From Podarcis filfolensis (taxonomy: Eukaryota): a stretch of DNA of 64,000 nt. The position numbers were made by a program, and so were the translations under genes. The stretch lies in assembly GCA_964270895.1 (NCBI GenBank), contig OZ185436.1; one strand, given 5' to 3'. The notes beneath the pieces are model-generated. The model was not told where the DNA came from and did no database searches. It saw nothing but the letters and a program-made list of their open reading frames with translations. Below, in pieces: positions 10,779-52,704 of the stretch (its first letter is position 1; each line of letters opens with the position of its first letter).

Positions 10779-12694
10779 CACTGGGCAACAATTTTTTACT
10801 TTTTGAATGTTGTCTAGATTTCTACAACTGATTTAGGGTATTTTTGCACTGCTGAATCAGGAAATGGCATCCGTTTCTCTCCATCAGGTCAGGTTTACTG
10901 TAAACTGAATGGTGGGCATTGATAAAGGTAAGTACACGTAAATTGCATGTTGCTTCACCATTTTTCAAACTTCTGGGTTTGAACTTCCATTTCTTGGAAC
11001 TCCTGGAATGCTCAGCGGCAGGGAGGTCTCTCTTCAGAGTCCAACAGTAGTCAGCCATCATGACTGCATCCCAGCGACCCTGATACCTGGTCTCCATCTC
11101 TTTCATGTCCTGATGGAATCTCTCCCCCTGCTTGTCACTCATTGAACCCAGGTTCTCAGGAAACCGGTCCATATGTGAAAATAGGTAGTGCATCTTGACG
11201 CTCATGTTGCAGTCCAGGTTTCTGAAAGCAGACAGCATGTTGTTGACAAGTTCTGCGTAGTTTTTGGCCTTATTGTTGCCAAGAAAGTTCTTCACTACGA
11301 GAACAAATGCCTTCCATGCTTCCAGTTCCACTTCATTCATTGAGTTTCCAAACTCTGGATCTCTGATGAGCTGACGGATCTGAGGACCATCAAAGATGCC
11401 AGCTTTCAACTTCTCCATGGTCAATCCTGGAAAAGCCTGGCACAAGTAAGTGAAGCAGTCACCATCCTTGTCCAGAGCCTTGGTGAACTGCTTGATTAAC
11501 CTGTGCTTGATGTGCAGCGGTGGGAAGAGTATTCTGTCTCTGTCCACCAGAGGGGCGTTGATGACGTTCCTTTCTTTGCAAGGCACCAATTCCTCCCGCA
11601 CAGGCCAGTCCTTCTTTGTGTAATGCTGAGCACGGTCCCTACTATCCCACATGCACAGAAAACATGGGTATTTGGTGAAGCCAAACTGTTGTCCTAACAA
11701 AAAGTTCACCATCTTCAGGTCAACACAAATAAACCATTTATGCTGATCATAACCAATTTTCTCCAGCACATACTTCACCGCTTCATAGTTCTCCTTCAGT
11801 GTACACGAGTGAGGCAGGGGTATAGAGGCAAACTGGTTGCCGTTGTGTAGCAGAACACATTTCAGTGATCGCTTGCTGCTGTCAATGAACAGTCTCCAAT
11901 CTTTGGGTTCGTACTGTGGCACTCCAAGCTTGAGCAGAAGCTGCGCAATATCTGCACAGTACACCAAGTCCTTCTCTTCCGAGAAAAAACGGAGGTACTC
12001 TTGATGCCTGTTGCGGAAGAAGCTGATGCGAGCACTGTCAGAGAGGAGGTTTTTTTCCTTCAATCTGGATGCCAAAAGTTCGGCAGAGTCCTTTGACAAG
12101 CTGAGGTCACGAACTAGATCATTCAACTCCTTTTGGGAAAATGGATGTGGAGCATCATCTTCAAGAACCACTTCTTCTTCTTCATGTCCTTCAACACTGG
12201 AGGCATATTCGTCACTAATGTCAGGAAGTTCTCCGGAGATAGGCACCGGAATTTCATCACAATGAGCTGCAGGACGACGTGCTGATTGAAGATCAGGATA
12301 CTTCGTGGGGCGGCTGCCCCATTAACTTAGTTTTGATCCCCCAACTTTATGCTTTGCCGCACCAATTTATGGAAGATTTCGAGGTTTTATGACTTCAAAC
12401 TGATCCCTTTTCGACATAATCACCCAGAACTATCAGACCTGAATACTTCTTGTCATTAAAATAATCATTTCCAATCAAAACAATTATTCGACATGGCATT
12501 TTACCCCCACCAACTTCTTCTAAAATGCTCCACACAAGCGTACATGTGAACAAAAACGTAAAAAACGACATGTGGCCATAGCTCAAAAACTTGACCTGAT
12601 TGAGCAAAACCAATGTGATTTTTGGATTCAGCGCATCAGATTCGTCCTAAATCAGCTGAAAAAATGCAGACAACAAATTTGTTGTTGACCAGTG
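10779..12694 (-). mobile_element. Chapaev3 (CMC superfamily) DNA transposon, 1916 bp, internally deleted
   Basis: Termini CACTGG(G/T)CAACAA inverted at both ends, 3-bp TAA TSD on both sides, subterminal GCTGAATC/GATTCAGC inverted motif, transposase core inside. Confidence 0.88.
10822..12321 (-). pseudogene. Chapaev3 transposase core, open frame lacking the N-terminal cysteine-rich domain and an upstream in-frame ATG
   Basis: Motifs KYPDL..RRP, FSQKELNDLVRDL, WRLFIDSSK, CVDLKMV, KYPCFLC.WDSR, PPLHIK, GERFHQD, MMADYCW; open from 12321 to the stop at 10822. Confidence 0.8.
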
Positions 12695-46383: not shown

Positions 46384-47106
46384 CCCAAGCTCATTCCTAT
46401 GTGCAAGCAGAGCAGCCATTCTCTCTGTGTTTTTAGTCCTGCCAGGACAGGAGTTAAGTGTTTCACAAAAGCGATTGTCAGAACCCTTCCTTACAGATAG
46501 AAAACTGTGCTAGATTGCCAGATGCAAAGGACTCCTGTAACGGGTAAACAGCTGCTGAAATCGCCTCTTCGAAAGAGTCGAGATTTCTGTCCTCCTTTTT
46601 CATCTGGTCACCCACGACCGTGTCTTCTGAGCAGGGGCGGGGAATGAGGGAACAGCTCTTGTAACGGCGGCAAGAACCACGAGAAAGCAATCCAGAGGAG
46701 GAGGAGGAGGAGGAGCAGAGCGCAGGAGATAACGAAGGCAACTCAGCGAAGGTTGCGCGCATTCGCCTCTCGAGAAACAAACGCATACGGAATTCTAAAG
46801 GGCAGCAGAAGGGCTTCCTTAAAAGACAGAGAAATTAGAGAAGAGGTAGTAAAAGGGCCGTCATCTTGCCAAGGTGGTGACCTCCAGCTGTCGATGGGCT
46901 ACAACTCCTTTCAGTCCCAGCCAGCAAAGTCGATGGTCAGGAATGATGGAAGCTGTAGCTCAGTGGTAGCTACAGAGTGACAACAAATGCTTAATCTCTT
47001 CTCCAAGAGGATGTAGGCAAAGGTACTCTTGGAAGAAAGAAGGTGCGGAACAACCGCGATCTATGACCCTTTGTTTCTTTCAGGCAACGAGGCACGACTC
47101 AGCCTC

Positions 47107-48537
47107 TTACTCCTCGCCCACGCTGACGTGGACCCGATGCCATGCGCTGTTGAGCACTCCCAAAATGTTCCAGATGGGCGCCACTGTGTTGGGCTGGTCG
47201 TTGTAGCTGGCATCCACAGCCTTGCAGACAATGTCCAGCTCTTTGGTGCCTTCGGGCACGCAGGCGTCCAGCTGCCACAGCTGCCACGCCCAGGCTCGAC
47301 CAGGCAGCTGCTCCTTCCCGGTGAGCTTGGCCACGTGCCAGCTCTTCCCACCATCCAGCGAAACATCGACGCGGATCACCCTTCGCCCCCCTCCGCTCCA
47401 AGCGTAGCCCTTCACTGTGAGCTCCCCAGGGCAGACGCAGGCACCTGGGCCCGGCTCGGTGATTGCCGACTGCACGGGCATATCTTGGATGGCAGGGGCG
47501 CTGGAGAAGTCCACGTTGTCCCACGTCATGGAAGGGGAGAATCCTTTGTAGTCCTTCTGCTGCCAGTGGCTCTGGCTTTCCTCCGGGCCCACCGTGATCC
47601 GGGCCAGCCACTTGACGTTACGAGCGCCGACTATCCCCGGCGCGATGACTCGGAGGGGGAAGCCGTTGTCCCGGGGCAACTCCTCCCCGTTCATCTCATA
47701 AGCCAAGAGGACGTCCCCGTCGGGACTCATGGCCTTCTTGAAAGGGATGGAGGCCCCGTAAACGGTGCCGCTCTGATCCTTGTCCAGTCCCTCAAAACAG
47801 ACGTGCCCCTTGTCGCCGGGTCTGTACCCGGCTTCTGCCAGGACATCCCGAAGCAAGGCTCCGCCCCAGCGCGCGTTACTAATGGCCCCGACACCCCAGC
47901 CCAGCCGGTTGGTGTTCTTGATTGCGTTCATCTCGGCCCGGCGATTGCCAGCGCATTGCAGGGTAGCGGTCACCTCGTGCTTGGGGAATCTCCTCTTCAG
48001 GTCCTGCAGGGATAGGGACATCGTCCGCCCGCCGGAACTCTGTACTTGCAGCCGGTAGGTGGCAGGGTCCACCACGGGCACGGGGAAGTGGTTGCGCTTG
48101 AAGAAGAGCGCGTTGGGAGTCAGGTAGTTCTCGGCAATCAGCTCCGGGGGGGTCTCTGCATTGAAGGGCTTCAAGGTGTTGATCCGCAGGGCGGGGTGCC
48201 GCTGGGGATCATTGGCGTATGGGTCTCCCGGGCTTGGCTGCGGAGGCTCCTCGGGGCTCAGCTCCCCCACTTTGTACCCGCGGAGGATCTCCAGCACGTG
48301 TTCCTGCTTGTGCATGGCGTAGAGGGCCCAGAACGGTTCCAGAGCGCCTCCTGCCGCCAGGAGGATCTTACTTTTGCCTCCAGGATGCACCTCTACGAAG
48401 TCTGTGATGTCAAAAACGTCGCTGCCATAGGTCACCCACACCCGACTCGCTTCACTGTTGTGGCGAGCCACCTCCTTCCGGGTAAAGACCGGAAATGGGG
48501 GTCCAGCTGCGGGCGCTGGGGTCTCAGGCTCAGCTGC
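47107..48537 (-). CDS. SUOX: Sulfite oxidase last coding exon (cytochrome b5 heme domain, Moco domain, dimerization domain)
   Basis: Acceptor ttccctacag|GCAGCT in phase 0; [48 protein letters not shown] and AWHRV motifs; TAA stop at 47107-47109. Confidence 0.98.
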
Positions 48538-48752
48538 CTGTAGGGAAGCAAGAGGGGAAAGCCATTAAGAAAGGAGAAACAAGGGCCTCTTTGCAGCCCT
48601 TAGCACTCTTCTGCCATGATCAAAGAGCCCCACTTATTTACACGAGAAGCCTGTCAAACCACAGTTGAACTATGGAGTTTGTTTCCTTTTTTAAAGCAAT
48701 TTTAAATTGGTTTTTAAACAAATACAAACACATTCACCACGAAACAGCAGTA

Positions 48753-50068: not shown

Positions 50069-50240
50069 CCGCCGACGGTGATCTCCATAAGCCAAGATGG
50101 TGCCTAGGCCCAGCCCGGCCCCTGCTGCTACCATGACCCTGCGCCTTGTGCTGCCAGCATCGTTCCAAGTGCCATGGTTGCGGGAGGTTGTCCAAGCCAT
50201 GCAGGCTGGAGGGTGGAGCCTCCAAGGCATCTCTCTCAAC
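50069..50240 (-). CDS. SUOX: SUOX second coding exon (172 nt): LREMPWRLHPP...GAGLGLGTILAYGDHRRR
   Basis: Acceptor ttggttacag|G, donor CGG|gtgagt; phases fit both neighbours; hydrophobic stop-transfer segment like recalled human GLGAVLAYQDHRCR. Confidence 0.92.
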
Positions 50241-52648: not shown

Positions 52649-52704
52649 CAGTGTGTTCTGTGAAGGATGCAGAAGCCATTCCTGCTGGGTTTGGACAGCA
52701 GCAT
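52649..52704 (-). CDS. SUOX: SUOX first coding exon: MLLSKPSRNGFCILHRTH(W); whole exon 52649-52715
   Basis: Acceptor ttttcctgttgcatgtag|GTATTGGGAAG ATG, donor CTG|gtaagg in phase 2; basic presequence-like peptide; spliced CDS of 1659 nt (552 aa). Confidence 0.85.

Follow-up and report, generated by a model that had tools for sequence, protein, structure and literature searches.

Replacement of a conserved sulfite-binding arginine, with accompanying pocket-region changes, in the sulfite oxidase of lizards and snakes

Sulfite oxidases (SO) of animals and plants are treated as binding sulfite with three conserved arginines, and one of these, Arg450 of the chicken enzyme (Arg472 in human), figures both in mechanistic models (QM/MM, PMC5856855) and in the engineering of substrate specificity. 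In the QM/MM description of the chicken SO sulfate complex, one sulfate oxygen is held by Arg190, the backbone N of Leu202, Arg450 and a water molecule, at distances of 3.26-3.37 Å from Leu202 N and 3.09-3.18 Å from Arg450, and Arg450 hydrogen-bonds the substrate or the product in every reaction state (PMC5856855). D330, K200 and G201 are mentioned neither in that paper nor in its supplement (PMC5856855).

Several described systems depart from this arrangement or share only part of it. Engineered chicken SO is available as a double mutant, Y322N/R450M (PDB 3R18, both changes visible in its phmmer alignment), and as a triple mutant, Y322N/R450M/V452M (3R19), and the titles of both entries among the Foldseek matches describe them as having 'altered activity and substrate affinity'. 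The molybdenum domain of Pichia angusta nitrate reductase (2BIH/2BII) has the SO-family fold, with a Foldseek TM of 0.68-0.74 and 30% identity to the lizard protein. Its pocket has Asn in place of Y322 and Met in place of both R450 and V452, leaving no arginine at the R450 site. The two engineered chicken variants, made by Qiu, Wilson and Rajagopalan in 2012, reportedly no longer oxidise sulfite and reduce nitrate instead. Arabidopsis SO (1OGP) and Starkeya novella SorA (2BLF) have the same Mo-domain fold (TMq 0.78 and 0.70, respectively) but, unlike the lizard enzyme described below, no fused b5 domain; heme-less plant-type representatives carry V/T-K/Q-G at 199-201 and Arg at 450.

Here, we describe the sulfite oxidase gene (SUOX) of Podarcis filfolensis as found in a stretch of 64,000 nucleotides of contig OZ185436.1 (assembly GCA_964270895.1), hereafter the window, together with its homologues. 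The lizard enzyme is an orthologue of chicken (1SOX/2A99/2A9A) and human SO, 67% identical to the chicken protein and built from the same three domains, and it differs from chicken SO by R450L, L449I, D330T, V199T, K200N, G201R and x203G, all at or beside the sulfate pocket, and further by N320K and V64M. Position 450 is uncharged and hydrophobic, as in 3R18 and 3R19, but the lizard enzyme keeps Tyr322 and Val452, has Leu rather than Met at 450, and adds G201R and the loop changes; with the Pichia angusta nitrate reductase it shares none of the residues at the Y322, R450 and V452 sites.

The SUOX gene and the reading of its active-site codons

The three SUOX exons (Table 1) have GT-AG boundaries and join into 552 uninterrupted codons followed by a stop. 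Exon 3 encodes most of the Cyt-b5 domain together with the Mo-cofactor and dimerisation domains, and its open reading frame of 454 codons (48471-47107, minus strand) matches PF00173 (Cyt-b5, 1e-14), PF00174 (Oxidored_molyb, 4e-61) and PF03404 (Mo-co_dimer, 4e-41). This domain order, on a single chain with an N-terminal presequence, is that of animal SUOX. The protein is 98% identical to Podarcis muralis SUOX, differs from that of P. raffonei at 6 of 454 positions, and has as its nearest relatives proteins annotated as SUOX; these identities mark the source as a lacertid, in or close to Podarcis.

Table 1. Coordinates of SUOX features in the window. The last column gives the codon change from outgroups to squamates and the number of steps.
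Feature	Positions	Strand	Description	Basis	Codon change
SUOX exon 1	52649-52704	minus	start codon, residues 1-19; GT donor 52648-52647	tblastn, 100% identity to Podarcis muralis SUOX
SUOX exon 2	50069-50240	minus	mitochondrial presequence and start of the linker toward the heme domain	tblastn, GT-AG boundaries, RNA contig ends
SUOX exon 3 (last)	47107-48537	minus	stop 47109-47107	AG acceptor 48539-48538, ORF, Pfam, RNA contigs
Met151	48313-48315	minus	replaces chicken V64; adjoins His152 (=H65); squamate-diagnostic	alignment
Cys271	47953-47955	minus	molybdenum ligand (chicken C185), codon TGC, CAGNRR motif, intact	alignment
Thr285-Asn286-Arg287-Leu288-Gly289-Trp290 (TNRLGW)	47896-47913	minus	replaces V199-K200-G201-L202-x203-W204; Arg287 codon CGG at 47907-47905	alignment	V199T: GTC/GTG to ACC, 2 steps; K200N: AAG to AAC, 1 step; G201R: GGG/GGA to CGG/AGG, 1 step
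Lys404	47554-47556	minus	codon AAG, replaces chicken N320; two residues before Tyr406 (=Y322)	alignment
Thr414	47524-47526	minus	codon ACG, replaces chicken D330 (Asp in 101/101 other vertebrates)	alignment	D330T: GAC to ACG/ACT, at least 2 steps
Ile534 Leu535	47161-47166	minus	codons ATT (47166-47164) and TTG (47163-47161), replace chicken L449 R450 (human L471 R472)		L449I: CTG to ATT, 2 steps; R450L: CGG/CGC to TTG (all five squamates), 2 steps

Among PDB chains, the best phmmer match of the protein is chicken sulfite oxidase 1SOX (E = 1e-214). The window reads ATC TGG AAC ATT TTG GGA GTG CTC AAC at 47175-47149 on the minus strand, translated as IWNILGVLN, and the leucine of this segment, residue 437 of the exon reading frame and 535 of the 552-residue protein, is aligned to R450 of 1SOX within a gap-free block of 41 residues in which chicken has APIWNLRGVLS. 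The third pocket arginine of animal SUOX, R450 (human R472), is thus Leu535 in the window. The equivalents of R138/R160, H140, R190, L202, W204, D321, Y322/Y343, G451/G473 and V452/V474 (chicken/human where two numbers are given) are intact, and the pocket residues R138, R190, W204 and Y322 are invariant across 20 squamates and 101 other vertebrates.

A first-pass annotation of the window had placed a TTG leucine at the human R472/chicken R450 site, preceded by an ATT isoleucine, in an uninterrupted gene with intact equivalents of the Mo-Cys of CAGNRR and of R160, Y343, G473 and V474, and had considered a single base-call error unlikely. The alignment to 1SOX, the reading of the codons and the three-exon gene model agree with this account in every particular, and independent DNA bears on the last point. 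Public runs were compared over 47000-48600, where DNA of a run from a different sample and study under the same organism label (X3) covers the whole segment as one contig, with 18 differences, none of them in codons 47161-47166 or in the loop at 47913-47896; the difference at 47524 leaves Thr unchanged (ACG to ACA). The confirmation of the codons rests on X3 and not on X6, X14 or X20, the difference lists of which are incomplete. Contigs of X6 and X20, two small, putative RNA runs from related organisms, match the window up to 48538 and then continue for 30 letters that match 50070-50099 exactly; this jump is the exon 2-exon 3 junction and the contigs hence represent spliced transcripts.

We therefore reject an assembly error, given the independent DNA contig, the same TTG codon in five squamate genomes and the spliced RNA contigs over the exon. 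More broadly, an artefact of assembly or base calling, or a pseudogene copy, has nothing in its favour and can be discounted almost entirely: the codons recur in X3, TTG recurs in the five genomes, and the coding sequence of 552 codons is intact with GT-AG introns, is matched by spliced RNA contigs of relatives and evolves with a dN/dS of about 0.1. No second squamate SUOX copy with the canonical residues, which the first-pass annotation had suggested looking for, was found in two protein searches (annotated proteomes, best 120 matches). The gene is a single, expressed SUOX orthologue, secure in its membership by descent and fold and missing one canonical active-site feature.

Two differences between the window and other sequences concern single samples. 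Met413 (ATG, 47527-47529, minus strand), beside Thr414, is Val in the other six lacertid SUOX sequences, and all four runs that cover the stretch, X3 included, have GTG (Val; 47529 T>C), so that Met413 is either a base error or a variant, allele or polymorphism, private to the individual that was sequenced. The X14 contig, from a related organism, is without 36 bases (47056-47091) of the SUOX 3' UTR, an indel just 3' of the stop codon.

Distribution of the changes among vertebrates and in the wider family

In an alignment of the window's protein with its best 120 homologues, Leu occupies site 450 in 20/20 squamates and Arg in 101/101 other vertebrates, the latter comprising turtles, birds, an alligator, mammals, amphibians, a coelacanth and ray-finned fishes. 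All 19 squamate clusters among these homologues carry the leucine; those with names represent Podarcis, Rhineura, Elgaria, Hemicordylus, two Anolis, Varanus, Salvator, Gekko, Paroedura, Eublepharis, Pogona, Phrynosoma, Pituophis and Naja, and four further clusters without names (Logan sequences) fall inside the squamates in the tree; one cluster represents skinks. When ten of the squamate clusters were expanded into their members, 48 more usable sequences became available, covering about 40 named species and including Zootoca, Lacerta, Python, Candoia, Liasis, Crotalus, Notechis, Pseudonaja, Thamnophis, Pantherophis, Ahaetulla, Phrynocephalus, Sceloporus, Sphaerodactylus, Euleptes, Heteronotia, Lerista and Tiliqua, and 48/48 have x-Leu at 449-450. 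These species come from each major squamate group in the sampling, dibamids not among them. With Leu found across squamate homologues, a private change of one species is rejected; nor is the change common across vertebrates, a possibility raised in the first-pass annotation, as it is confined to squamates, which form a clade in the SUOX tree with an SH-aLRT of 100.

Beyond the vertebrates, Arg at 450 is near-universal over about 270 wider homologues, about 245 distant homologues having it. Among at least 150 representatives of the wide family, clustered at 50% identity, it is present in 128 of about 140, and several of the exceptions have visibly derailed C-termini. Of at least 119 C-terminal fragments, the 118 with an intact C-terminus all have Arg (117 by motif search, one by eye) and the remaining one is derailed.

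The timing of the change is bounded by the squamate sampling. A search for tuatara or intermediate sequences with the C-terminal 177 residues, which returned fragments of 97-310 aa, had a pigeon fragment as its closest match, and a search scored on residues 180-454 recovered the same 19 squamate clusters, with the next match dropping from 493 to 452 bits. As these searches returned no tuatara (Sphenodon) sequence, the change is datable to before the squamate crown. Fixation in squamates would then be more than about 200 million years old.

R450L is one of several changes of the same distribution. A screen for columns with at least 95% conservation among the 101 non-squamates but another residue in squamates gives S111T, V199T, G201R, D330T, L449I and R450L, and inspection of the segments adds K200N (19/20 squamates), x203G (20/20) and N320K/R; the loop TNRLGW is present in 48/48 further squamate sequences. 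Judged from these alignments, at least eight changes in the pocket region are fixed across the clade, well beyond the single substitution first noted, and they go back to one origin on the squamate stem. All changes lie on one branch and thus count as a single evolutionary event, which means that their co-occurrence is not statistically testable as coevolution. An unnamed, gecko-like Logan sequence (P0010) is the only squamate with Lys at 200, in a loop reading TKRLGW; as it combines K200 with R201, the two residues can coexist.

A looser criterion yields 13 squamate-diagnostic sites, five of them at 198-203 and the others including 320, 330 and 450. V64M also belongs here, with Met in 20/20 squamates versus Val in 93/100 other vertebrates. 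Its neighbour H65 (lizard His152) is the presumed second axial ligand of the b5 heme, and the heme centre may, on this pattern of substitution, have changed together with the Mo pocket.

In the wide family, the individual changes differ in how exceptional they are. Gly occupies 201 in 141/150 representatives and Arg in none (at least 150 representatives), and among all sequences examined Arg at 201 is found in squamates only. T at 199, Q/S/N at 200 and T/S at 330 each occur widely alongside Arg450, and V199T, K200N/Q/S and D330T/S are therefore not in themselves tied to the loss of R450. Since these other variants occur with Arg450 and Arg201 never does, the combination unique to squamates is G201R with R450L. 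V/I at 199, K/R at 200 and D/E at 330 are associated with one another (Fisher p = 7e-5 to 0.04, phylogeny ignored), a pattern that shows two alternative states of the pocket rim and is uninformative on 201 and 450, which are invariant outside squamates.

The codon changes in Table 1 were read from exon 3 DNA of the window and of Gekko, Paroedura, Anolis and Rhineura, with Carettochelys, Alligator and Dromaius as outgroups. Within squamates, pairwise Nei-Gojobori dN/dS is 0.08-0.16; the underlying dS is high (0.3-1.3), which makes the ratio rough while leaving the constraint clear, and between squamates and outgroups dS reaches 0.9-4, near saturation. The coding sequences indicate that the remodelled SUOX is kept by purifying selection, and the new residues vary no more among squamates than the old ones do in other clades.

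Position separates these changes from those of other clades. Taking as near the pocket any site within three residues of the sulfate-contacting positions 138, 190, 202, 204, 322 and 450, 6 of the 13 squamate-diagnostic sites are near it (hypergeometric p = 2e-4), compared with one of 11 in mammals, one of 7 in birds and none of the 0 to 5 diagnostic sites each in turtles, amphibians, anurans and fishes. Four squamate-diagnostic changes, V199T, G201R, D330T and R450L, fall at sites with at least 97% invariance outside the clade; a single such change, off the pocket, is seen in each of birds, mammals, amphibians and ray-finned fishes, and none in turtles. Squamates are thus unusual in the position of their changes and not in their number.

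These comparisons bear on whether the set could be the product of near-neutral drift on a long squamate stem, that is, of uncoupled substitutions with the loss of R450 tolerated and then frozen. The counts are compatible with such a history, in that the totals of diagnostic sites are similar (13 in squamates, 11 in mammals) and the squamate stem does not exceed the mammalian one in length (0.22 substitutions per site in both) and is not much longer than that of birds (0.18). R450 and G201 are, however, invariant in other vertebrates, and R450 is near-universal in the roughly 270 wider homologues, so the sites are not tolerant ones; furthermore, the changes cluster at the pocket (p = 2e-4), which the mammalian and avian ones do not, and the replacement residues are themselves invariant over about 40 species. 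We consider drift improbable.

Predicted structure, charge and possible roles of the new arginine

An AlphaFold2 model of the exon 3 protein, built with a 70-sequence alignment, has a mean pLDDT of 92.9 and a pTM of 0.87, and the block that contains the new loop has a pLDDT of 90, with 97-99 in the neighbouring blocks. In Foldseek, the model aligns to 1SOX with a TM of 0.90 and to 2A99 and 3HBP with a TM of 0.98, showing the Mo/dimerisation fold, and the chicken Mo and dimer domains superpose at 0.9 Å over 373 columns. The structural comparison with chicken SO that had been suggested for this gene accordingly gives a matching predicted fold, and from the 0.9 Å superposition the backbone is predicted to be unchanged. 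Residue 201 directly precedes the backbone N of Leu202, so that an arginine there is within reach of the site of the R450 guanidinium, and we infer that the side chain of Arg287 is turned into the pocket and makes up for the missing arginine.

The reading that we favour, with a probability of roughly 55%, is that the third pocket arginine was relocated, with charge conserved, in an enzyme that stays a sulfite oxidase. R450 and the invariant D330 were lost, and on the adjoining loop K200 gave way while a new arginine appeared at an invariant glycine (G201R). The guanidinium of Arg287 would replace R450 as an anion-binding group, reaching its sulfate oxygen from the opposite side, with the third pocket arginine supplied by the 199-204 loop in place of the C-terminal domain. 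D330, left without its cationic partner, would have been removed together with K200, and the conformational glycine would have shifted from 201 to 203 (x203G). The pocket would be built differently, and the enzyme would still be a sulfite:cytochrome c oxidoreductase. The summed charge of K200, G201, D330 and R450 is +1, as is that of the squamate N, R, T and L, and the new Arg201, beside the backbone NH of Leu202, would keep the pocket cationic. The more specific proposal, that in all lizards and snakes the substrate-binding arginine itself migrated within the active site, from 450 to 201, with the removal of K200 and D330 coupled to the move, is one that we advance only tentatively.

The same substitutions can be paired differently and still be charge-neutral: K200/G201 to N/R would move the lysine charge locally by one residue, and D330/R450 to T/L would remove an ion pair. 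Two substrate-binding arginines would then be left, which implies altered kinetics or selectivity. Such a shift in function, in which one of three substrate-binding arginines is lost, Arg287 serves another role, such as docking of the heme domain or of cytochrome c, and the enzyme differs physiologically in its Km, its turnover, its inhibition by anions or a side activity like nitrite reduction, is in our judgement the less probable reading. It would accord with the hydrogen bonds of R450 to the substrate in all reaction states (PMC5856855) and with the altered activity and affinity in the titles of the chicken variants that include R450M (3R18, 3R19). V64M, which adjoins the presumed heme ligand, hints that electron transfer may have adapted along with the pocket, and the concentration of stem changes at the pocket fits adaptation as well as it fits compensation. 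On the other hand, the net charge over the changed sites is kept, and Y322 and V452, the other determinants of nitrate reduction, are unchanged. To our knowledge, no lifestyle or physiological trait concerning sulfite or nitrite unites squamates as against turtles, crocodilians, birds and amphibians.

With regard to nitrate and nitrite, the first-pass annotation had seen in the gene a naturally remodelled SO that might have moved toward such chemistry. The remodelling is real, and larger than had been supposed, in the form of a Squamata-wide set of changes; the shift in chemistry finds no support in the sequence, because Y322 and V452 are intact, and 450 has Leu instead of Met and an arginine has been added. 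Where nitrate-reductase-type enzymes have Asn for Y322, Tyr406 is present in 20/20 squamates, and where they have Met for R450 and V452, the lizard has Leu535 and Val537. Nitrite reduction is a known side reaction of SO. If the relocated geometry that we favour altered anion selectivity or this side reaction, an essential mitochondrial detoxifying enzyme would differ in a whole vertebrate order.

Significance and other features of the window

The squamate enzyme is apparently an undescribed natural redesign of the active site of an essential enzyme. A full-text search, with most subscription journals outside its scope, found no description of a squamate-wide replacement of R450 with a G201R partner. 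Literature on sulfite oxidase or SUOX in squamates gave as its only match a paper on viper colour pattern that has SUOX papers among its references, and among matches to the residue names R472 and R450 the QM/MM paper (PMC5856855) was the only relevant one, with no kinetics of R472/R450 mutants found.

For enzymologists, squamate SO offers a natural double-mutant cycle (G201R and R450L, plus K200N and D330T) that could be used for testing the role of pocket electrostatics in substrate binding, product release and Mo-heme electron transfer. Additionally, it provides a clean case for the study of epistasis and of the order of substitutions in active-site evolution. TNRLGW together with WNILG can serve as a marker motif for squamate SUOX, and variant-effect predictors trained on strict conservation would miscall the squamate residues as deleterious.

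Elsewhere in the window, an open reading frame of 474 codons at 10822-12246 (minus strand) has no Pfam match, and its composition and a C-x-x-C motif (YPCFLCMWDSR) resemble a transposon-derived protein and not a host exon; Pfam searches with four long open reading frames of the window other than that of SUOX gave no matches. Finally, a short (GGA)n/(GAG)n run at 46690-46715, 3' of SUOX, is probably an ordinary microsatellite.
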